Origin: Azolla caroliniana
Taxonomy: Eukaryota > Plantae > Polypodiophyta
Assembly (NCBI GenBank): GCA_043228905.1
Contig: JBHGNT010000001.1
Location: 21,142,001 to 21,206,000, forward strand
Direction of reading: 5' to 3'
Length of the DNA stretch: 64,000 bases
Shown: positions 680-15,300 of the stretch, piece by piece
Layout: the number at the start of each line of letters is the position of its first letter
Numbering within the stretch: position 1 is the stretch's first letter
Notes under the pieces: model-generated
Databases searched by the model: none
What the model was told of the DNA's origin: nothing
The model's input: the letters and a program-made list of their open reading frames with translations, nothing else
Translations under genes and position numbers: made by a program

Positions 680-3600
680 TTAATCAATTTCCTCCACGTC
701 CTCATTGACCTTGCCCACATTTGTGGGTCCCGTTGTACTATCTTCATTGTCGAGGTCATCGAGGTTAGGACCCTCATCTTGTCTTTTCTTGAATATCTTC
801 ACTCTTTTCCCCACAATGGGTATGGCAAGCCTTGATCCGTCTAGCTCCGCCAGTTGGTAAGTGGCGTTGTCGTTGGCACTCATCACTACATATGGTCTGA
901 ACCACCTTCTTGCGAACTTCCTTGTCGTCATGTGTTGGTTGTCAAGGCTGTTGTCATAGACCAATACCCAATCTCCTTCTTTGATCTTCTTCGAATGCAG
1001 TCGGTGTGTCTTATCGAACAGAATCTTATTCTTCACTCGGGTTGTCTTCATTATCCTTTGCATGTTCTCTAGATCTTCAGGTCTTCTTTCGAGCTGCTTT
1101 ATCCGTGCCGCCAATAATTCGTCCCGGCTCATCTCGTTCTCCCATGGTATTGCTACCCATGAGGCGATTGTCCTCTTGATGGGCATTACTGGTTTATGTC
1201 CATATATGAGCTCTGCTGGCATATAGCCTGTCACGGAACTGTGCATAGTTCTATCGGCCCACAATGCATATGGTAATAATCGCGGTCAATTCCCAACTCG
1301 ACCATCGAATGCTCGTACGATGGCTTTGACTATCGGCCCATGCCCTCGCTCGATCTTCCCATTTGCTTCTGGATTATAGGCAGTTATGAGGGGAGAGCAG
1401 TACACCTAGTCACTCGAACAGCTCCATTGCTTCGTGTGCATCTAACTCCCCTGATCGGCCACTTTCTTTCCCACACAACCGTATCGGTAGACGATCTCTT
1501 CGAGCAAAAATTTGCACACGGCTGTCGTCGTCTTATTTGCTAAGGGTCGTCCTTCTACTTGGTTTGTCAGGTCTTCCCTCGCTAGTACTAAGTACTTCAT
1601 TTGCCCCACTCCCATTGGCATTGAGACCAGATCCACCATCCATTTTAAGTGTATAGTGAGTGAGTATGTTGGCCACAACTCATCACGGTGACGTATGTTC
1701 GAATGTACTTGGCAGCTTTCGCATGTGGACACAAAACGTAGTACATTTTTATACATGCTCGACCACCAGTACTTCTCCTTTAGATTTTCAAATGTTGCCC
1801 ACATTCCTCTAGCAGTGGGCCCGGTTTCAGCTTAAACCGAACCGATCCGTTAAACCATGGTTTAAAGGTTTATAAGTTCCAAAATAATTAAATGGTTTGG
1901 TTTGGTTTTAATTAATAATAAACAGTTCGGTTTCAGTTCGGTTTGGTTTTGAAACTAGGGTCTATAGGTTTATAGGTTTATAGGTTTTTAGGCTACCTTT
2001 TTTTATCCATTAAATGTTTATGTAATTTAATGGTTTAATTAATATATTTTATTGGTTTAATTCACTTAACTTAATTGTTTATTTAATCTAATGGCTCAAT
2101 TAATCTTATTTATTTATTTATTTATTCATTTATTTATTTAAACATAAATGCTTATTTAATTTTCTGTATTTTATTGAATTATTTTTTAATTAACTTGGCT
2201 TAAATGTGGTTAGGTTTAAACTTTTTATTAAATGGTTCGGTTTGGTTTTAACTTTTCCCTAAACGGTTTTGGTTTAAATGGTTTAATTTACATTTTTTTA
2301 AAATGGTTTGGTTTAAATGTTCGAATGTTCATAAATGGTTTGGTTTCAAGGCACCGAAACCGAACCAAACCGGGCCCATTGCTATGTTCCTCTATGACCT
2401 ACCCATGGAATCTCGTGGAATTCAGACATCAACGTTGTTTGGTCCTCTTTCTTCACCACTACTCGTCGTGGTATCCCTGTCCTTCTCTTTGGGTGCCACC
2501 AGAGGAATCCTCCCTTCAAAAAGTACTGGTAAGCTTTCTTTCATATTTGTAGAGCCTCCTCCTTCGTCCACGAAGCATCCACCATCATTGTTCTCGAGAA
2601 TCTACCGATTAGTAACCTCTGTCTTCTTTCGACAATCGGGCTGCCTTGAAGAAGTTGAGGGCGACATCTTCATCTTCCGAAACCATGTCACCCTCATCCT
2701 CGAATCTTGCTCTTGACAACATGTCGGCCATGGCGTTGTTCTTCCCAACAATGTGGCGGATCTCTGGGTTCAAAGACTTGATATAAGCGATCCACCTCAG
2801 CATAAGAAGATCTGGTGTCGCACATCCGGAGATCATCCCAAGGATTGGGAGGCAATCCGTTTCAATTACCACCTCCGACCCAATCAGGTAGTCCTTGTCT
2901 ACCTTCACTACAGACATGATACCCCAGAGTTCCCGCTTTACTTGGGCATATCCTCATTGTCGTTCGCTAAGGAAATTTGCTCCGAACCGGATGGTGTACC
3001 GTGTGCTATCTTCTCCTTCTTGGTTGATGACCCATCCAATCCCTGTTGGACTCGTCGTATCTACCGTGACGTAGATGGGCATCCCTTCTTTGTAGACGAC
3101 TTTCCTTAAAGTTGGTGCTGCCACCAGTAGCCCTTTTAACCTCTTCATCGCCTCTGTGTGTACCGTTTCCCATTTAAACTTTCTCCCTTTTTACAGTAAG
3201 CTATACAAGGGTTTAACCACATGAGCATAGTGCGGAATCCAAATGTGGTAGAACGCACATGCTCCTAAGAATCTTTGAACCTCTCTCTACGTTCCACATT
3301 CCTCTCGCATCTCTTGAATAGCATTCACCTTCTCGGGAGAGGGTTTCTGTCCGTATGGTCCACAAAGATGTCCTACTACTAGGATCTCGCGTTGGCCAAA
3401 TGCTGATTTTTCTTCAGAGAATGTGAGCCCTGCACCTTCTAGTCTTTCTAGCACTCTTCTACAGTCTTCAATATGGTTTGAAACAAAGCTTCGACATCCA
3501 TCTTGATCTAAAGACTCGTCCTTCTCTGATTCAGGGCACCCCTTTATAGGGATATCATCGAGGAAGGGCATCGTAATATCTGGGATGCAATCTCTTAGTA

Positions 3601-4748
3601 CTTTGTTCATGGCATTCATCATGTGGGCCATTGAGTTAGTTGCCCCTTGCGGTAATGTACACATCCTCACTAGCCCAATGGGAGTCCGCATCGTTGTGAT
3701 GTCTTGACTATCCAAAGACAATTGAAATTGTTTGTATCAAGAATGCAAGTCTCCAATCGAGTAAATCGACCTTCCTGCAAAAGCTTCAACAAACTCATCA
3801 ACACTAGGTCCAATACCAACATTACGAATGGTGACCATATTTACCGGTTGTAGATCTTGGATAAATCGAAGTGCTCCATTCTTCTTCTGCACTGCTAACC
3901 ACCTATTTGAATAAGGTGCATTAGATGGCTCAAGGATTCCCATTCTAATCTTTTCTTTTAACCACTCTAGCAATCTTGGAATGTGAGCTCTTGGAACGGG
4001 AATTGGCTTCAAGTTCCATGGCACATGGGGTATTGTAAAGATAACCATTGGTTCCACATGCGTTGGGTCAACACATTCGATCTCTTGTGGGGAAAAGGCA
4101 AATGCTTTCCCGTCTTGCTCCAACATTTCCTAGAACTTGGACTCTATTTTGGGAAGCAAAAAGTCACCCCCACCAAATTTGAGCTTCCTCCGAGTTTCGT
4201 CGGGGAAGACATGTCCTACTCCTTTCGGGTCTCTAAGGCATGGATCTCGTGCTACCTCCTTTATTCGTTGCCAATTGTCTTCAGGCAAGGGAGCAGGCAC
4301 AGGTATGACCTTCTTATCTAGAGTCTTGTATTTGGTATTAACTTCGACTTCATCCGTTGCAACACCTTGTTCGTATTCGTCAATGGTGGTGTATAAGGTG
4401 ACAGAGTTGATTGGAATCATTATGTTGACTTGTAGTTTCGATTCAATGACTTTCTCCATTTCTCCAAGATTATCATCAAATGATATTATTTCCATGTATC
4501 CGTTTATTGCCTCTTCCTCGCTCATAATCCTGATTTCTCTAAGTTGTTCCACTAGGATTTCTATTTTAATATCTCCTCCATTAATGTTGCTAAATTTACA
4601 TATCCCATTTTCAGAAAACAAGACTTCATTTTCATTAATGGGGTGACAACTTTTATTACACTGATTTGGAGACATAGTTGTCCCGGACTATTGTTGTCCC
4701 TCTCCCTAATAGCCCGAATTAAAAATCCTCCCTAGATTCTTTCCCTAA
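680..4748 (-). pseudogene. Gypsy A pol remnant (RT, RNase H, integrase) with stops, frameshifts and a MITE insertion
   Basis: RT motifs LPQGATNS and PFLDDIPIKG; RNase H ETDCLP...NAMADMLSR; integrase CESCQ, WMVDLV, GYMPAELIYG and C-terminal RWFRPY. Confidence 0.9.
1810..2384. mobile_element. Non-autonomous hAT-type DNA transposon (MITE)
   Basis: TIRs TAGCAGTGGGCCCGGTTT / AAACCGGGCCCATTGCTA. Imperfect 8-bp TSD CATTCCTC/TGTTCCTC. Subterminal AAACCG/GGTTT repeats and AT-rich core. Interrupts the integrase. Confidence 0.8.
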
Positions 4749-5963
4749 GAATTGTGAGGTACACGTAAAAATACCTTCTGGCTAGGGTTAAATACACGAG
4801 GTTGCCTATTATGATCGGCATAAAAACGCGCTCTATTAGTGAGCTGTTTTTATATTATCTTGTGCAATACGCAACATATCTTGCATATCCCGAAGAAAGT
4901 TTTGCATACTTCGCAACTCATCATGATGTATATTAACATCATTCGGGGTTCGTGGCTGAAAACCATACATCAACATAAAAGGACTATATCCCGTCGACGT
5001 ATGCTTGGAGTTGTTATAAGCAAACTCCAAAATTGGGAGATAACGTTCCCATTTTGTTGGTTTTGCACCAATGTATACTCGAAGCATGTCCTCAATAATT
5101 TGATTTACTCGTTCTATCTGTCCATTGGATTGAGGATGATCCGTGGAACTCATGCTCAATGTAGTTTCTAACTTCTTGAAGACTTGCATCCAGAAGTCAC
5201 TAGTAAACTTTAGATCTCGGTAACCCATAAAAACGAAATAACTCATCAATGAATTGGTAAGCCAATTCAGGAGCTGTTATCGTGGTTTTAGTAGCAATAA
5301 ATCTGGCCATTTTAGTTAGTCTATCAACCACACCCCATATGGCATCATGGCCTTTTGGGTGCGAGGAAGGCTAACAATACAATCCATGGATATACTTTCC
5401 CACTTATTATTGGGAATGTCCAAGGGATGTAAAAGTCTTGCAGCTTTAAATCGCTCAGCTTTGTTAACCTGACATTGGTGACATTTAGTCACATAGCTAT
5501 GTATGTCGGGGTGCATCTTAGGCCAATAGAATTGAGTGGAGATGAGAACGAGTGTACGATGTATTCCAGGGTGCCCTACTGAGGGTGCATCATGGCATTC
5601 AAAAAGAATTCTCTTTTTGACCTCAGGCAAATCTGGAACACAAACCTTCCCATTACGGTAGAGCGGACCGTTAGCAATGTGGAAGTATTCCTTCGAGGAT
5701 GTGGTGGTATCTGTTCCAGACTCAACTATTGCCCAATATTTTGCAAAATAATTGTTATCAGGATACTTTCCTCGAAGGTGATTATAAAGATCTGATGATA
5801 TTTCAGTGAAGCTAAGCATGTTAACTTCACGGATGCGACTTAGTGCATCAACGACAGTGTTCATGGAACCTTTACGATATTGTATTGAAAAATCAAAGTC
5901 TTGGATGAGATCAGCCCATCGTGCCTTACAACCTTTCAGGTCTTGTTGGTCACAAAAATATTT
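4749..5963 (-). pseudogene. Gypsy B integrase and RNase H end fragment (chromovirus-like pol)
   Basis: ARWADLIQDFDF, HDAPSVGHPG..CHQCQ, WESISMD, HPQSNGQIERVN, GYSPFMLMYG. Confidence 0.88.
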
Positions 5964-6175
5964 GTTGATCATACGATCGTCGACAAGGAGTGCGTATGGT
6001 GTATCATCGGTGCACGGCTTAGAGAGCATGAGAGAGAGATTAAACCTTCATAACTTAAATTACTATAAGGATTAAAACTTAAATATAACTAAAATATCTA
6101 AAACTATAATGAGAAAGGGAGAGAAGGCTAGTCATTAGGTATTAATTCAAAAGACAAACAAATGTTACTAACATG

Positions 6176-6219
<44 letters not shown>

Positions 6220-6288
6220 GAGTGATTAAGAGCAAAGCTACTACTAATTATCTTTAAGATTAGGAAAGAAAAGAAATTACATGGGGAT

Positions 6289-6347
6289 ATGGTCATGAGC
6301 AAACTAGTTTCGCCCACTATGGGGCTCATCAGTGCTAAAATGACCAT
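6289..6347 (-). ncRNA. Minimal type I hammerhead ribozyme
   Basis: Minus strand AUGGUCAU-UUU-AGCA-CUGAUGA-GCCC-CAUAGU-GGGC-GAAA-CUAG-UU-UGCU-C-AUGACCAU. Intact core, stems I and II, palindromic ACUAGU stem III, NUH = GUU (cut between 6302 and 6301). Confidence 0.85.
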
Positions 6348-7401
6348 TAGGGTTGGATAGGTTTATATAAGGAGTTTTAGGAGAGGGTTTAGAGAAATGA
6401 CAATAGGGAGTGGGGGTGTGTGCTTATGGATATGCTTTGGAAAGGGGAAGATTTGGAGAAGAAGGAAAAAGATACTATGAGCTTTAATGTGACAAGGGGG
6501 AGGTTTTGGTAGAAGAAAATAGAGGTTATAATGTTAAGGAGGAATAAGAGAAGAGAGAGTTAGGATATGAAATGTAAAAAGAGGGGAAATATTAAAAGGG
6601 GAGTCAAGATTGAGGGGGAAATAAGGAAAATCAGTGAGATGATGAGAAGGGAAGGAAAGAGGAGAGAGAGAGAGAGAGAGAGGAGTAGACATAAGAGGAG
6701 TGAGTAGATCTACGAGGATCAAGGGTGGGAAAACGTGAGAAAAGTATGAGAGAGAAAGAGGGTAGAGAGAGGAGAGAGATGCACGTGTAACCTAGACAAA
6801 GCAAGAAAGAGAAAGGAAATAGGAGAGAGGTAGGGGAGAGAGACAAGTGTGGGGAAAGAGGAAAAAGAAAAAGGGGGAAGGTTATAGATTTAGGAAGAGG
6901 ATGGGGAGGGGTAGAGTAAGAAAAAGTAGAACATGGGTGAGGGTAGAAAAACAAAAATGGAAAGGTGGATAAAATAGGATAAGAAAAGATTTTGAGAGAG
7001 AGAAGGAAAACTAAGAGAGGGAGAAGTGATAGCTTAAGTGTGAGAGAGGAAAAGATTTATAGAGAGGAGGGGTGGGGGTAGGGTGTTTAGTTTTTAAGAA
7101 ATGAGGGGGGGTGTTTAGGGGAGGGGTAGAGTGGTAATAGGAAAATGTGGGAGGAGGGGTAGAAAGGTAAATTTGAGAAAGTGAGGGGGAAGTGTAGGAG
7201 GGTAATTAAGGGTAATTTAGGAAAAGTAATTTAGGAAGGTGAGGGAGGGGTACGGCGATAAATTGACAAAGTGGGGGTGAAGTGAAAAGTTCACCAAGAA
7301 CGATTTGAGCGCACCCAAACCGTTTGATACACTTGGTGTGAGCTAGGGAGGGTTAAGGTTTAGGGTAGGGTGGTAATATAAAAGTAAAGGGAGGGAGAGA
7401 G

Positions 7402-7454
<53 letters not shown>

Positions 7455-7524
7455 CAAGATATAAAAGTAAGAAAGATAGAGGAAGAGAGAGAGAGAGAGA
7501 CAAAAGAGGATATGAAAATAGGAA

Positions 7525-7566
<42 letters not shown>

Positions 7567-7869
7567 AATATATGGGGGAACCAAGAAGTCAAAGAGAGAG
7601 GGGAATGAAAAAGGAGAAGAGTGTTATGGAGAGAGAAGAGGGAGGGGTAGGAGATAATAATAAAAATAAAAAAAAATAAAAATGGTGAAACATGGGTGAG
7701 GGTAAAAACTACAAATAAAAGGAAATCGAGGTTGCATTAAAAAGCTACTAAAAGAAGAGTTAAGGGGAGGGCCAAAGTTAAACTATATAGAAATGGAGGA
7801 GATGGGTGGTGGGTAAATATAATCTAAAGATTAGGTTTTTAATAAAAGTGTAGGAGAGAAATATGAGTC

Positions 7870-8080
7870 AAAATATGAAAAAGTAGGGGAAGGTGTAGTG
7901 TTGAAATTACTAGAAAGTAGGAAGGGTAGGACTGGAAATAGGAAAAAGTATGGAGGGGTAGGGTTGAAAATAGAAGAAAGTAGGGGGGAATGGTAGGGCT
8001 CAAAATAGGTGAAAGTACGGGAAGGGTAGGGCTAAAAATAGGTGAAAGTACGGGAGGGGTAGGGCTAAAAATATGAAAAA
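7870..8080 (+). repeat. ~32-bp G-rich minisatellite (about 6 units) inside the ribozyme element
   Basis: Units like AAAATAGGTGAAAGTACGGGAAGGGTAGGGCT. Confidence 0.75.
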
Positions 8081-8702
8081 TCTAACACGGAGTGAGTGCA
8101 TATGTAGGGATGTGGGTGACGAGCATTGTGATTGGCAATTTTAGGGTTTGAGATACAAAATGAAAATAATGTCGGCTATCGAATGTAGTCCCGGACATAT
8201 ACAATGAAAAAGAGATAAGAAATGGGAAATGCATGGCTACCGAATGTAGTCCCATGCTTACAACATAATGGTGTGCAACATAATGATGTGCGAAAAGTAA
8301 GGTGGGGTGTTGAGAGCTTGTTATGTGAGAGGATATGAGAGACAACTTGATGACGCCATTGCATTGCCACGTAACGTTTTGTGGGGGCACTCGACACGAA
8401 CGAGGGCTCGGTGGTTGACGATGCTATCTCGCCGTGGGTGCCTATCCCCGATACGTGGGCCTCCATAGAAAATGCGGTATCCTAAGTTTTGTTGATCATA
8501 CGATCGTCGACAAGGAGTGCGTATGGTGTATCATCGGTGCACGGCTTAGAGAGCATGAGAGAGAGATTAAACCTTCATAACTTAAATTACTATAAGGATT
8601 AAAACTTAAATATAACTAAAATATCTAAAACTATAATGAGAAAGGGAGAGAAGGCTAGTCATTAGGTATTAATTCAAAAGACAAACAAATGTTACTAACA
8701 TG

Positions 8703-8746
<44 letters not shown>

Positions 8747-8809
8747 TTAAGAGCAAAGCTACTACTAATTATCATTAAGATTAGGAAAGAAAAGAAATTA
8801 CATGGGGAT

Positions 8810-8868
8810 ATGGTCATGAGCAAACTAGTTTCGCCCACTATGGGGCTCATCAGTGCTAAAATGACCAT
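8810..8868 (-). ncRNA. Minimal type I hammerhead ribozyme (second identical copy)
   Basis: Same sequence as 6289-6347, offset 2521. Confidence 0.85.
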
Positions 8869-9191
8869 TAGGGTTGGATAGGTTTATATAAGGAGTTTTA
8901 GGAGAGGGTTTAGAGAAATGACAATAGGGAGTGGGGGTGTGTGCTTATGGATATGATTTGGAAAGGGGAAGATTTGGAGAAGAAGGAAAAAGATACTATG
9001 AGCTTTAATGTGACAAGGGGGAGGTTTTGGTAGAAGAAAATAGAGGTTATAATGTTAAGGAGGAATAAGACAAGAGAGAGTTAGGATATGAAATGTAAAA
9101 AGAGGGGAAATATTAAAAGGGGAGTCAAGATTGAGGGGGAAATAAGGAAAATCAGTGAGATGATGAGAAGGGAAGGAAAGAGGAGAGAGAG

Positions 9192-12100
9192 AGATCCACC
9201 ATCCATTTTAAGTGTATAGTGAGTGAGTATGTTGGCCACAACTCATCACGGTGACGTATGTTCGAATGTACTTGGCAGCTTTCGCATGTGGACACAAAAC
9301 GTAGTACATTTTTATACATGCTCGACCACCAGTACTTCTCCTTTAGATTTTCAAATGTTGCCCACATTCCTCTAGCAGTGGGCCCGGTTTTAGCTTAAAC
9401 CGAACCGATCCGTTAAACCATGGTTTAAAGGTTTATAAGTTCCAAAATAATTAAATGGTTTGGTTTGGTTTTAATTAATAATAAACAGTTCGGTTTCAGT
9501 TCGGTTTGGTTTTGAAACTAGGGTCTATAGGTTTATAGGTTTATAGGTTTTTAGGCTACCTTTTTTTATCCATTAAATGTTTATGTAATTTAATGGTTTA
9601 ATTAATATATTTTATTGGTTTAATTCACTTAACTTAATTGTTTATTTAATCTAATGGCTCAATTAATCTTATTTATTTATTTATTTATTCATTTATTTAT
9701 TTAAACATAAATGCTTATTTAATTTTCTGTATTTTATTGAATTATTTTTTAATTAACATGGCTTAAATGTGGTTAGGTTTAAACTTTTTATTAAATGGTT
9801 CGGTTTGGTTTTAACTTTTCCCTAAACGGTTTTGGTTTAAATGGTTTAATTTACATTTTTTTAAAATGGTTTGGTTTAAATGTTCGAATGTTCATAAATG
9901 GTTTGGTTTCAAGGCACCGAAACCGAACCAAACCGGGCCCATTGCTATGTTCCTCTATGACCTACCCATGGACTCTCGTGGAATTCAGACATCAACGTTG
10001 TTTGGTCCTCTTTCTTCACCACTACTCGTCGTGGTATCCCTGTCCTTCTCTTTGGGTGCCACCAGAGGAATCCTCCCTTCAAAAAGTACTGGTAAGCTTT
10101 CTTTCATATTTGTAGAGCCTCCTCCTTCGTCCACGAAGCATCCACCATCATTGTTCTCGAGAATCTACCGATTAGTAACCTCTGTCTTCTTTCGACAATC
10201 GGGCTGCCTTGAAGAAGTTGAGGGCGACATCTTCATCTTCCGAAACCATGTCACCCTCATCCTCGAATCTTGCTCTTGACAACATGTCGGCCATGGCGTT
10301 GTTCTTCCCAGCAATGTGGCGGATCTCTGGGTTCAAAGACTTGATATAAGCGATCCACCTCAGCATAAGAAGATCTGGTGTCGCACATCCGGAGATCATC
10401 CCAAGGATTGGGAGGCAATCCGTTTCAATTACCACCTCCGACCCAATCAGGTAGTCCTTGTCTACCTTCACTACAGACATGATACCCCAGAGTTCCCGCT
10501 TTACTTGGGCATATCCTCATTGTCGTTCGCTAAGGAAATTTGCTCCGAACCGGATGGTGTACCGTGTGCTATCTTCTCCTTCTTGGTTGATGACCCATCC
10601 AATCCCTGTTGGACTCGTCGTATCTACCGTGACGTAGATGGGCATCCCTTCTTTGTAGACGACTTTCCTTAAAGTTGGTGCTGCCACCAGTAGCCCTTTT
10701 AACCTCTTCATCGCCTCTGTGTGTACCGTTTCCCATTTAAACTTTCTCCCTTTTTACAGTAAGCTATACAAGGGTTTAACCACATGAGCATAGTGCGGAA
10801 TCCAAATGTGGTAGAACGCACATGCTCCTAAGAATCTTTGAACCTCTCTCTACGTTCCACATTCCTCTCGCATCTCTTGAATAGCATTCACCTTCTCGGG
10901 AGAGGGTTTCTGTCCGTATGGTCCACAAAGATGTCCTACTACTAGGATCTCGCGTTGGCCAAATGCTGATTTTTCTTCAGAGAATGTGAGCCCTGCACCT
11001 TCTAGTCTTTCTAGCACTCTTCTACAGTCTTCAATATGGTTTGAAACAAAGCTTCGACATCCATCTTGATCTAAAGACTCGTCCTTCTCTGATTCAGGGC
11101 ACCCCTTTATAGGGATATCATCGAGGAAGGGCATCGTAATATCTGGGATGCAATCTCTTAGTACTTTGTTCATGGCATTCATCATGTGGGCCATTGAGTT
11201 AGTTGCCCCTTGCGGTAATGTACACATCCTCACTAGCCCAATGGGAGTCCGCATCGTTGTGATGTCTTGACTATCCAAAGACAATTGAAATTGTTTGTAT
11301 CAAGAATGCAAGTCTCCAATCGAGTAAATCGACCTTCCTGCAAAAGCTTCAACAAACTCATCAACACTAGGTCCAATACCAACATTACGAATGGTGACCA
11401 TATTTACCGGTTGTAGATCTTGGATAAATCGAAGTGCTCCATTCTTCTTCTGCACTGCTAACCACCTATTTGAATAAGGTGCATTAGATGGCTCAAGGAT
11501 TCCCATTCTAATCTTTTCTTTTAACCACTCTAGCAATCTTGGAATGTGAGCTCTTGGAACGGGAATTGGCTTCAAGTTCCATGGCACATGGGGTATTGTA
11601 AAGATAACCATTGGTTCCACATGCGTTGGGTCAACACATTCGATCTCTTGTGGGGAAAAGGCAAATGCTTTCCCGTCTTGCTCCAACATTTCCTAGAACT
11701 TGGACTCTGTTTTGGGAAGCAAAAAGTCACCCCCACCAAATTTGAGCTTCCTCCGAGTTTCGTCGGGGAAGACATGTCCTACTCCTTTCGGGTCTCTAAG
11801 GCATGGATCTCGTGCTACCTCCTTTATTCGTTGCCAATTGTCTTCAGGCAAGGGAGCAGGCACAGGTATGACCTTCTTATCTAGAGTCTTGTATTTGGTA
11901 TTAACTTCGACTTCATCCGTTGCAACACCTTGTTCGTATTCGTCAATGGTGGTGTATAAGGTGACAGAGTTGATTGGAATCATTATGTTGACTTGTAGTT
12001 TCGATTCAATGACTTTCTCCATTTCTCCAAGATTATCATCAAATGATATTATCTCCATGTATCCGTTTATTGCCTCTTCCTCGCTCATAATCCTGATTTC

Positions 12101-13526
12101 TCTAAGTTGTTCCACTAGGATTTCTATTTTAATATCTCCTCCATTAATGTTGCTAAATTTACATATCCCATTTTCAGAAAACAAGACTTCATTTTCATTA
12201 ATGGGGTGACAACTTTTATTACACTGATTTGGAGACATAGTTGTCCCGGACTATTGTTGTCCCTCTCCCTAATAGCCCGAATTAAAAATCCTCCCTAGAT
12301 TCTTTCCCTAAGAATTGTGAGGTACACGTAAAAATACCTTCTGGCTAGGGTTAAATACACGAGGTTGCCTATTATGATCGGCATAAAAACGCGCTCTATT
12401 AGTGAGCTGTTTTTATATTATCTTGTGCAATACGCAACATATCTTGCATATCCCGAAGAAAGTTTTGCATACTTCGCAACTCATCATGATGTATATTAAC
12501 ATCATTCGGGGTTCGTGGCTGAAAACCATACATCAACATAAAAGGACTATATCCCGTCGACGTATGCTTGGAGTTGTTATAAGCAAACTCCAAAATTGGG
12601 AGATAACGTTCCCATTTTGTTGGTTTTGCACCAATGTATACTCGAAGCATGTCCTCAATAATTTGATTTACTCGTTCTATCTGTCCATTGGATTGAGGAT
12701 GATCCGTGGAACTCATGCTCAATGTAGTTTCTAACTTCTTGAAGACTTGCATCCAGAAGTCACTAGTAAACTTTAGATCTCGGTAACCCATAAAAACGAA
12801 ATAACTCATCAATGAATTGGTAAGCCAATTCAGGAGCTGTTATCGTGGTTTTAGTAGCAATAAATCTGGCCATTTTAGTTAGTCTATCAACCACACCCCA
12901 TATGGCATCATGGCCTTTTGGGTGCGAGGAAGGCTAACAATACAATCCATGGATATACTTTCCCACTTATTATTGGGAATGTCCAAGGGATGTAAAAGTC
13001 TTGCAGCTTTAAATCGCTCAGCTTTGTTAACCTGACATTGGTGACATTTAGTCACATAGCTATGTATGTCGGGGTGCATCTTAGGCCAATAGAATTGAGT
13101 GGAGATGAGAACGAGTGTACGATGTATTCCAGGGTGCCCTACTGAGGGTGCATCATGGCATTCAAAAAGAATTCTCTTTTTGACCTCAGGCAAATCTGGA
13201 ACACAAACCTTCCCATTACGGTAGAGCAGACCGTTAGCAATGTGGAAGTATTCCTTCGAGGATGTGGTGGTATCTGTTCCAGACTCAACTATTGCCCAAT
13301 ATTTTGCAAAATAATTGTTATCAGGATACTTTCCTCGAAGGTGATTATAAAGATCTGATGACATTTCAGTGAAGCTAAGCATGTTAACTTCACGGATGCG
13401 ACTTAGTGCATCAACGACAGTGTTCATGGAACCTTTACGATATTGTATTGAAAAATCAAAGTCTTGGATGAGATCAGCCCATCGTGCCTTACAACCTTTC
13501 AGGTCTTGTTGGTCACAAAAATATTT
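9192..13526 (+). repeat. Copy 2 of the 4335-bp duplication (A pol remnant, MITE, B integrase)
   Basis: Matches 1629-5963 at offset 7563. Confidence 0.95.
9373..9947. mobile_element. Duplicate copy of the hAT-type MITE
   Basis: Same TIRs and flanks as 1810-2384, so it was copied with the segment rather than inserted independently. Confidence 0.8.
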
Positions 13527-15300
13527 CAAGGACCCATGGTCCGTAGTTATCACAAAGCGATTTCCATAAAGATAATGACGTCATGTTTTGAGCGCATGTA
13601 TAACTACAAATAATTACTTTTCTTGAATAGTATACTGACATTGAGCAGAATCAAGTTTCTTACTCTCGAATGCTATTGTTTTACCATCTTGATATAAGAT
13701 AGCACCTATAGCATAATCACTTGCATTGGTTTCAACCTCAAAAGTTTTTGAAGGATCGGGTAAAAGAAGTGAAGGAGCCTTGGATACCAGGTTCTTGGAT
13801 GAGATCAGCCCATCGTGCCTTACAACCTTTCAGGTCTTGTTGGTCACAAAAATATTTCAAGGACCCATGGTCCGTAGTTATCACAAAGCGATTTCCATAA
13901 AGATAATGACGTCATGTTTTGAGCGCATGTATAACTACAAATAATTACTTTTCTTGAATAGTATACTGACATTGAGCAGAATCAAGTTTCTTACTCTCGA
14001 ATGCTATTGTTTTACCATCTTGATATAAGATAGCACCTATAGCATAATCACTTGCATTGGTTTCAACCTCAAAAGTTTTTGAAGGATCGGGTAAAAGAAG
14101 TGAAGGAGCCTTGGATACCAGGTTCTTGGATGAGATCAGCCCATCGTGCCTTACAACCTTTCAGGTCTTGTTGGTCACAAAAATATTTCAAGGACCCATG
14201 GTCCGTAGTTATCACAAAGCGATTTCCATAAAGATAATGACGTCATGTTTTGAGCGCATGTATAACTACAAATAATTACTTTTCTTGAATAGTATACTGA
14301 CATTGAGCAGAATCAAGTTTCTTACTCTCGAATGCTATTGTTTTACCATCTTGATATAAGATAGCACCTACAGCATAATCACTTGCATTGGTTTCAACCT
14401 CAAAAGTTTTTGAAGGATCGGGTAAAAGAAGTGAAGGAGCCTTGGATACCAGGTTCTTGAGTTACTTAAAGGCGAGGTCTAGTGTAGCATTCCAGACAAT
14501 AGGTTTTGTAGACTTACGCGTTTGACCTTTTAGAAGATCAATAAACGACGTCGTCAATTGGGAGTAATTATGACGGGATTTTCGCAAAAGCCCGACAAAA
14601 CCAAGGAATGATCGAACTTCTTGAATGTTCCGAAGAGTGGGCCAAAGCTTGATTTTCTCGATGCGAGAAGGATCAATTTCAACTCCTCGTTTGGTTATGA
14701 GATGTCCAAGATAAGTAATTGATTTCTTGAAGAACTCGCATTTTGAAATCTTCGCATAAAACTGTTTGTCATGCAATGTTTGTAAAACAAAGCGGACATG
14801 TTTAGCATGCTCTTGTAATGTACGGCTATAAACTAAAATATCATCCAAGAAAATAACGACAAATTTTCAAGTTGTTCTCAGAAAATGTCATTCCTTTCTT
14901 GTTGAAATGTAGCCGGAGCATTGGTCAAACCAAAAGGCCTAACCAAAAACTCATAATGTCCATAGCGCGTACGAAATGCTGTTTTAGGAACATCGTCCTC
15001 ACTTATATGAATTTGATGGTAGCTAGTACGGAGATCAAGTTTCGTAAAATACCGAGCTCCTTGGAGACGGTCAATTAGATCATCAGCCAGGGGCAATGGA
15101 TACGAATTCTTGATCGTCACTTTATTCAAGCGTCGGTAATTAATACACATACGCCATGTGCCCTCTTTCTTTTTAACCAAGAGAATTGGTGCACCCCATG
15201 GAGATTTACTATAACGTATATAACCCATTCGTAAATAGTCCTTGAGTTGCTTTGATACCTCATCCTCTTCAGATCGACTCAAGCGATAAGGAGAAAGGCT
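12312..15300 (-). pseudogene. Gypsy B pol remnant (RT-RNase H-integrase)
   Basis: [49 protein letters not shown]; RNase H ETNASDYAIGA; integrase motifs. Confidence 0.9.
13462..14459. repeat. Three tandem copies of a 331-bp unit covering the RNase H domain of B
   Basis: Units start at 13462, 13793 and 14124, with TCTTG microhomology at the junctions. Confidence 0.95.

Follow-up and report, generated by a model that had tools for sequence, protein, structure and literature searches.

What kind of mobile element carries two identical hammerhead ribozyme motifs in a fern genome, and how could it have reached its present place? The question is raised by a 3.2-kb insertion at positions 5963-9191 of a 64,000-nt stretch of Azolla caroliniana DNA (assembly GCA_043228905.1, contig JBHGNT010000001.1, positions 21,142,001 to 21,206,000), here called the window. 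The insertion is probably an interstitial, gene-less and non-autonomous derivative, in a land plant, of a Penelope-like element (PLE) of the endonuclease-deficient type, with direct repeats that represent pseudo-long terminal repeats (pseudo-LTRs). An initial annotation, made from the letters of the sequence, had proposed a non-autonomous retroelement whose terminal repeats carry true hammerheads of the minimal type I form, standing nearer to PLEs than to the LTR retrozymes of angiosperms. The first part is supported by the analysis described here, and the second by the type I motif together with modules shared with PLEs. The suggestion that this is a new system did not survive, as the element fits endonuclease-deficient PLEs with pseudo-LTRs, of which non-autonomous derivatives have already been described (PMC8557442; bioRxiv 10.64898/2026.07.22.740005).

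Anatomy of the insertion and its hammerheads

The element consists of 1.28 head-to-tail copies of a 2,521-2,527-bp non-coding unit, and for this reason its repeats are regarded as pseudo-LTRs, not true LTRs. Its features, all on the minus strand, are the following (ORF, open reading frame; UTR, untranslated region).

5963..9191, minus: whole insertion (pseudo-LTR, body, pseudo-LTR), delimited by its junctions against uninterrupted paralogous copies of the flanks and by self-BLAST
8490..9191 (to 9194), minus: upstream pseudo-LTR, an incomplete copy of the unit, truncated on its 5' side and starting in (CT)n
5963..6673, minus: downstream pseudo-LTR, a direct repeat of the upstream copy
8883-8890, minus (second copy 6362-6369): TATA box TATATAAA, 35 nt before the CA in front of CUGAUGA
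8810..8868, minus: upstream minimal type I hammerhead, predicted cleavage 8823/8822; family model R1 = 101.7 bits
6289..6347, minus: downstream minimal type I hammerhead, predicted cleavage 6302/6301; stem covariation in relatives
8766..8778, minus: TAATGAWAAT-type motif followed by (CT)n, ~45 nt downstream of the hammerhead
8490..8540, minus (second copy 5963-6013): 3'-terminal module, an invariant CGCACUCCUUG followed by a small hairpin
8300..8537, minus: block A, homologue of the PLE 5' UTR and ORF1 start, with an ATG at 8466; found by nhmmer and alignment
7259..7398, minus: conserved island, common to other non-coding relatives only

The ends of the element are ambiguous by 2-3 nt of microhomology, namely CT at 9192-9194 and AAA at 5963-5965, and the terminal-module copy at 5963-6013 forms its 3' end. 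The direct repeats differ by 3 substitutions in ~705 nt (~99.6% identity) and by the lengths of microsatellites, and both terminate in ...GATCAACA. In other words, the ~700-bp direct repeats with this ending that had been annotated are confirmed, at 5963-6673 and 8490-9191/9194. The TATA box was equally found where it had been proposed, at 6369-6362 and 8890-8883.

The two hammerheads (6347-6289 and 8868-8810) are identical, 59 nt long and offset by 2,521 nt, and the core, stems and palindrome all lie exactly as first described. The catalytic core is complete in both copies; in the downstream one, CUGAUGA occupies 6332-6326 and GAAA occupies 6311-6308. Stem II comprises four base pairs (GCCC/GGGC) and is closed by the 6-nt loop CAUAGU (6321-6316), stem I is open and comprises four base pairs (AGCA/UGCU) and eight more (AUGGUCAU/AUGACCAU) with a UUU/C internal loop between them, and helix III is the bare, loopless palindrome ACUAGU. 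The predicted cut follows a GUU triplet in both copies, which belongs to the active NUH cleavage sites (PMC3138052). All defining core elements of a hammerhead, namely CUGANGA...GAAA, A15.1-U16.1 and an NUH triplet, are present in both. A loose core pattern occurs in the 64 kb only at these two places, against 0.26 occurrences expected. The comparison with Rfam that had been suggested gave a divided result: no hammerhead match was obtained at gathering thresholds, and in a permissive search both copies span the whole Hammerhead_HH9 model (type I) at 26.4 bits (E = 0.0014). In the predicted fold of the monomer, part of the core pairs with helix III and the three-way junction does not form, which agrees with the earlier claim that a single copy is too short to fold by itself. 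The dimer fold calculated with ViennaRNA was a domain-swapped duplex instead of the canonical dimer and was not used as evidence.

The reality of the ribozyme was assessed through its relatives. Metagenome contigs were scanned with a pattern that held the core and helix III constant, together with one pair of stem II (the first) and two of stem I, and left the rest free; this gave 86 loci (numbered with the prefix L). Most of the loci used belong to a single ENA assembly series, ERZ10343xx to ERZ10344xx. To judge from sequence identity, this series clearly contains the same or a closely related host, because the window element shares 93.5% identity with L022 over 1.8 kb and 79-86% with a dozen further loci across repeat and body. 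A covariance model built from six close relatives and run on the window and 52 loci recognised 59 hammerheads. Standard pairs fill 93.7% of the cells among 36 distinct sequences, compared with 80.4 +/- 1.0 in shuffles (none of 500 as high), and two-sided changes occur at 11 of the 16 stem pairs, in 81 cells against 24 +/- 5 in shuffles. When the partners are slid along each other as a control, pairing falls to 29-42%. In the distal part of stem I, all eight pairs covary, and all of them lie outside the search pattern; its variants include GGUCAU/AUGACC, GGCCAC/GUGGCC and GACCUAA/UUAGGUC. The third stem II pair is U-A in some relatives and C-G in others. Conservation of the stems among copies, on which the initial annotation had made its proposal depend, is thus borne out. 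The invariance of ACUAGU among the retrieved loci is uninformative, being fixed by the scan pattern. A consensus produced by RNAalifold from a MAFFT alignment was wrong, with the core paired to helix III, and was replaced by the model-based alignment.

The element is also multi-copy and not the single-copy sequence that would have spoken against the first proposal: many variant contigs occur in low-coverage DNA sequencing runs under two species labels. The best-supported differences within the motif in these runs are single-base deletions in loop II. As far as comparative sequence data reach, the hammerhead family is real, and its cleavage activity is a prediction.

These results also bear on the reading that no retroelement exists and that a chance or decayed motif sits in a segmental duplication or an assembly artefact. 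The sub-threshold Rfam scores fit it, and so does the position at the joint of a 4.3-kb tandem duplication in repeat-rich, assembly-error-prone sequence. However, the stems covary across dozens of related copies, homologous copies exist in independent data sets with two species labels, and the 4.3-kb blocks differ at 8 sites and meet the element at two precise junctions. On these three grounds, this reading is extremely improbable and was rejected.

Further hammerheads were observed among the loci. L022 carries a second one at 4691-4772 (minus), 2,156 nt from the first, which is of a different subtype with the core CUGAAGA and the triplet GUA; its helix III is ACAUGU, so that the palindromic character is retained. 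Therefore, two hammerheads in one element need not match. In L014, a tandem second hammerhead (5743-5815) follows 257 nt downstream of the first; its core is mutated to CUUAAGA and it is presumably inactive. An unrelated hammerhead family, probably from another host, is found in L001, L002, L004, L008, L019, L020 and ~20 more loci (JAAUYA01... contigs), with the same core and ACUAGU, a C-rich stem I, a long stem II and, in some members, a GUC triplet.

The ribozyme belongs to a larger module. In an alignment of 11 copies from families that are otherwise unalignable, the TATA box is unchanged and keeps its distance to the ribozyme. Across ~30 distinct families, autonomous PLEs included, it lies in most cases 34-40 nt before the CA preceding CUGAUGA, usually with a CT-rich tract before it, and a TAATGAWAAT-like motif with (CT)n follows the ribozyme after 14-58 nt. 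In the window element, the second copy of this motif (6245-6257) has one substitution (6253). The motif may serve as a polyadenylation or recognition signal.

Kinship with Penelope-like elements

The link to PLEs comes from block A. A single-query nhmmer search with 8560-8280 matched four protein-coding loci at E ~1e-6, and a profile made from the first-round hits matched 17 protein-coding loci at E = 1e-16 to 1e-37, in every case over the sequence immediately before a long ORF (ORF1) and the beginning of that ORF. The alignment contains an invariant CGCACTCCTTG motif, a small hairpin, an ATG GAG start and conserved codons beyond it. In the window, a 96-codon ORF on the minus strand (8466-8176) begins with this relic of the PLE ORF1 start, the remainder of ORF1 having been lost, and its N-terminal peptide resembles the N-terminus of the long ORF in several loci. 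The earlier statement that the unit has no ORF therefore holds in that the unit is non-coding, and needs correction in that a coding trace is present at 8466-8176.

The protein-coding loci have an ORF1 of ~650-850 residues and an ORF2 of ~660 residues, with a hammerhead 240-390 nt downstream on the same strand. ORF1 is rich in proline and threonine and returned no Pfam family and no usable Atlas neighbour. ORF2 gives a weak RVT_1 match and contains sequence motifs that we take to be typical of PLE reverse transcriptases; its homologues include proteins of Cryptomeria, Selaginella and Ginkgo with ~40% identity, and no relative was found among solved structures. In more distant animal homologues, RVT_1 is joined by a GIY-YIG domain at the C-terminus, as is canonical for PLEs, whereas the close homologues lack GIY-YIG. 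By homology, ORF2 of these relatives is a PLE reverse transcriptase free of endonuclease. The autonomous families comprise L061:311-8692, which is a head-to-tail PLE tandem, L014:853-5561, L011, L047, L043, L069, L021/L051, L079/L058, L015, L086 and L006.

The window element and the autonomous PLEs have in common the TATA box, the hammerhead and the 5' UTR/ORF1 start, and the contig set that yielded the 93.5%-identical copy also contains matching autonomous PLEs. A tblastn search of the window with PLE ORF1 and ORF2 returned nothing; therefore, this copy is non-autonomous and gene-less. Linked Penelope ORFs, for which a check had been suggested, are present in related metagenome loci and absent from the window. 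A reverse transcriptase borrowed in trans, as first suggested, is plausible, given that PLEs from this contig set possess both the same TATA-hammerhead module and the same 5' UTR/ORF1 start. The region before the hammerhead matches non-coding relatives and no autonomous PLE, and the region after it (5963-6285) has no match.

The same block bears on how the repeats are to be read. They could alternatively be true LTRs of an LTR-type retrozyme, a terminal-repeat retrotransposon in miniature (TRIM) or a large retrotransposon derivative (LARD) moved by Ty3/gypsy machinery. In favour of this are the direct repeats of ~705 bp, which hold a ribozyme and a promoter-like TATA box as those of NbRZ1 do (PMC12029980), and the location in a nest of gypsy and copia elements. 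However, position 8490, where the repeat has its boundary, lies within a block (8540 to ~8280) that runs without a break in all relatives and is homologous to the PLE 5' UTR. Moreover, the hammerhead is of type I and not type III, and the unit measures 2.5 kb against 0.6-1 kb for retrozymes. Neither a primer-binding site after the upstream repeat nor a purine tract before the downstream one was found in either orientation. A search of the element likewise revealed no tRNA gene and no tRNA-Met primer-binding site, which confirms the annotated lack of a recognisable tRNA primer-binding site. TG..CA ends are missing as well, the repeat starting in (CT)n and ending in ...AACA on the ribozyme strand, and no short (4-6-bp) target-site duplication exists at the flanks, which are two sites 4.3 kb apart. 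The LTR alternative is very unlikely, being largely refuted by the type I ribozyme, the missing LTR hallmarks and the PLE-homologous boundary.

Derivation from a PLE is also reflected at the 3' end. The terminal module corresponds to roughly the first 50 nt of block A. More than 14 partial copies end at profile positions 48-62, where the window repeats end too, and by this comparison the 3' end is the true terminus of the element. In L006 (autonomous), L026, L033, L044, L084 and L023, the sequence runs from this terminus into (CCCTAAA)n, which is the plant telomeric repeat in reverse complement, and the arrays are always on the ribozyme strand. A tract of this kind that immediately follows the terminal module marks telomere-attaching PLEs. 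The tandem junctions of L021/L051 hold two telomeric repeat units between the hairpin and the ORF1 start. Covariation in the terminal hairpin is weak and not significant, 59 of 500 shuffles being as high.

The telomeric arrays were located at L006:2-64, L026:2408-2428, L033:658-678 and 3029-3049, L044:331-351 and L084:2362-2382, and further ones at L012:1257-1277, L025:632-652 and L007:1-84. Within the window, the sole telomere-like stretch is a degenerate one at 7352-7365, which precedes the conserved island and is not above chance. Short tandem arrays of the terminal module and a fragment of the conserved island occur at L053:2034-2296 (~148 nt in L053) and L033:490-618 and 2861-2989; they may be chains of extremely 5'-truncated copies. 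L029 (1,896 bp) is circularly permuted, with a ~57-nt stretch (6587-6643 of the window element) matched at both of its ends. This arrangement suggests a tandem or circular ~1.84-kb unit of a sister family that has the island after the ribozyme and not before it. In the body of the window element, 7870-8080 (minus) contains CCCT-rich tandem repeats of ~31-34 nt that are ~78-83% identical.

Insertion site and proposed mechanism

A 4,335-bp direct duplication flanks the element, which occupies the precise joint between the two copies.

1629..5962, unstranded: flanking block S1, parts of two nested Ty3/gypsy elements, with 8 mismatches and 1 indel against S2 in 4,334 nt
9192..13526, unstranded: flanking block S2; S2 and S1 directly adjoin the element, one on either side

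Read along the minus strand, the insertion comes after an integrase zinc-finger region and before an RNase H end, which belong to two different Ty3/gypsy elements, and both interrupted reading frames are intact in the second copy 7,563 bp away. Read from this arrangement, the element is mobile, since it has split two coding sequences of which the paralogous block retains unbroken versions. Identity amounts to 99.82% between the blocks (8 of 4,334 sites differ) and to 99.6% between the pseudo-LTRs (3 of ~705), values compatible with a single age for the duplication and the element. The joints show microhomology, CT on the 5' side and AAA on the 3' side, and the duplication looks like a giant target-site duplication or a template-switch product. 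Unequal crossing-over was judged less economical than a single event, since it needs two independent insertions in the same orientation 4.3 kb apart. An assembly artefact is unlikely because of the eight differences between the blocks and the exact joints. The element is interstitial: the distance to one end of its sequence piece is at least 14 Mb.

A possible route can be outlined from this geometry. A PLE reverse transcriptase acting in trans would copy an RNA longer than one unit, because the upstream repeat holds ~320 nt upstream of its own TATA box. In one version, the two hammerheads would pair through ACUAGU into an active dimer and release a unit-length RNA, and the template would be a 2,521-nt circle, cut at both ribozymes, ligated and read 1.28 times. 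In another version, it would be an uncleaved, multimeric read-through RNA from a tandem donor. In either case, a free plus-strand genomic 3' end at 5962 would pair with the AAA after the terminal hairpin and prime synthesis. The cDNA would run over 1.28 units and be rejoined through the CT microhomology 4.3 kb behind the priming site, the 4,335-bp block being duplicated in the same event. This geometry would require a second copy of the block, such as that provided by a template-switching nascent strand at a stalled fork.

The promoter adds a constraint on the RNA. The usual spacing from a TATA box to the start of transcription in plants is 25-35 nt, and the TATA box thus predicts that transcripts begin inside the 5' arm of the distal stem I in the adjacent hammerhead, or shortly beyond it. 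With a start in stem I, the ribozyme of that unit would be incomplete, and therefore only the next ribozyme downstream would be whole.

The choice of template separates the circular version from a possible, though less likely, reading in which the element is PLE-derived and its hammerheads are not involved in mobilisation: a linear, uncleaved read-through RNA would be copied, and the pseudo-LTR would result from 5' truncation of a multimer. The ribozyme would then be, with the same tentative standing, a passenger or serve another role, such as 5' processing of co-transcripts. The linear version is kept alive because cleavage proved dispensable in a vertebrate PLE in vitro, where catalytic mutants inserted normally and no reads ended at the cut site (PMC11167929). 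Additionally, minimal PLE hammerheads are poor cleavers in vitro (PMC4209133), and the inserted copy keeps two intact ribozymes and sequence upstream of the predicted start, so that the template exceeded one unit. Possible donors in head-to-tail arrangement also exist, namely L061 and the circularly permuted L029. On the other hand, cDNA copied from a ligated circle would contain intact ribozymes as well, and the strong conservation of the stems and of the fixed TATA spacing across otherwise unalignable families points to selection on the ribozyme. The circular template is slightly favoured over the linear one because it explains why a pseudo-LTR exists and also why a dimer-type ribozyme is under selection. 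The complete scheme, in which a 2.5-kb ligated circle is copied in a rolling-circle manner by an endonuclease-free plant PLE reverse transcriptase from a stray genomic 3' end, is a speculative one and on balance unlikely. If true, circle copying would explain both the origin of pseudo-LTRs and a kilobase-scale tandem duplication with cDNA at its joint, and it would constitute an endonuclease-independent, RNA-templated route to structural variation in plants.

Several points weigh against a PLE derivative whose hammerheads act in its mobilisation. The 26.4 bits obtained with Hammerhead_HH9 fall below the gathering cut-off of 52, as expected for a motif without a helix III loop. Retrieval by exact core makes the core, helix III and two stem I pairs invariant by construction, and the covariation alignment, being fitted to the model, is biased towards structure. 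The window copy has no telomeric tract, since ...CAACAAA is followed by the flank 6-9 nt after the hairpin. PLE coding sequence is missing from the window, and the autonomous partners are known from metagenome contigs of the same or a related host and not from this assembly. None of the 15 listed runs is on record as RNA, and their contigs show no starts or ends, so that transcription, cleavage and circles are predictions. Finally, the standard TATA-to-start spacing would truncate stem I of the upstream ribozyme, and in the vertebrate PLE cited above insertion in vitro did not depend on hammerhead cleavage.

Comparison with known systems and the surrounding sequence

The hallmarks of Athena/Coprina PLEs are the lack of an endonuclease and reverse-complement telomeric repeats next to a hammerhead (PMC8557442). 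The autonomous relatives resemble such endonuclease-deficient PLEs in having a PLE reverse transcriptase without GIY-YIG and a hammerhead in the repeat region, in forming head-to-tail chains and in bearing reverse-complement telomeric repeats at the 3' end. The hammerhead module, the 5' UTR/ORF1 start and the 3' terminus connect the window element with these relatives. In contrast to endonuclease-deficient PLEs, the window copy is interstitial and has neither ORFs nor telomeric repeats, and its hammerhead lies 270-420 nt upstream of the terminal module, whereas theirs stands immediately beside the telomeric tract. In plants, telomere-associated PLEs of Selaginella moellendorffii are attributed to Gladyshev and Arkhipova 2007 in the citing passages of PMC8557442 and PMC12477314. 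Selaginella PLEs are reported to carry canonical hammerheads, unlike the minimal dimer-type ribozyme described here (PMC4209133).

Gene-less derivatives offer further parallels. Like the MRC1-type derivatives of Chlamydomonas (PMC8557442), the window element lacks genes, retains PLE ends and forms pseudo-LTRs or tandems; unlike it, Chlamys elements mostly lack hammerheads and derive from endonuclease-containing PLEs. The minimal type I hammerhead with a palindromic helix III is shared with animal non-LTR retrozymes, for which movement through circular RNA has been proposed (PMC7229834; bioRxiv 10.64898/2026.07.22.740005). These animal elements are tandems of 170-400-nt units expressed as circular RNA, whereas the present one has a 2.5-kb unit in 1.28 copies and resides in a land plant.

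Angiosperm LTR retrozymes (PMC4918200; NbRZ1, PMC12029980) are likewise non-coding, with a hammerhead in each repeat just downstream of the promoter, and the predicted product is again one unit of RNA, released by cleavage at the two ribozymes. The LTR promoter of NbRZ1 is situated directly before the ribozyme, and the latter removes the 5' leader (PMC12029980). However, angiosperm retrozymes carry hammerheads of type III and are further marked by a polypurine tract, 4-bp duplications and a tRNA-Met primer-binding site, none of which was found here; they are also 0.6-1 kb long and mobilised by Ty3/gypsy elements, and neither property was found for the window element. Putative tandem-hammerhead elements in early-diverging plants are mentioned in a review (PMC5680766).

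Thus, the kind of element is known and hardly described in plants. What is new here is the host lineage, the minimal dimer-type hammerhead in a plant PLE (those in the searched literature being canonical), the fixed spacing between TATA box and ribozyme, and an interstitial copy with a kilobase-scale flanking duplication. In the searched literature, Selaginella is the example of a rare telomere-associated plant PLE, and this locus with its relatives adds a second plant lineage, which comprises several endonuclease-free PLE families and many gene-less derivatives, all with the minimal dimer-type hammerhead. Animal retrozymes, PLEs and plant ribozyme elements are thereby brought closer together. 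Moreover, the fixed TATA-hammerhead spacing defines a promoter/ribozyme unit that is directly testable. The precisely bounded insertion, with its microhomology and a duplication of the same age, is a rare natural record of how an endonuclease-free element can enter and remodel a chromosome arm.

The surroundings of the element are rich in other transposons. Among the long ORFs at 17421-62149, 10 of 43 were scanned as a sample, and these belong to Ty3/gypsy, to Ty1/copia or to no Pfam family; neither a host gene nor a PLE reverse transcriptase is among these ten. The nearest named relatives of the transposon proteins are from liverworts, ferns, conifers and Selaginella, at 40-45% identity. Just past the duplicated block, at 13726-14275 on the plus strand, two identical 72-codon ORFs lie 331 bp apart, which points to a short tandem duplication.

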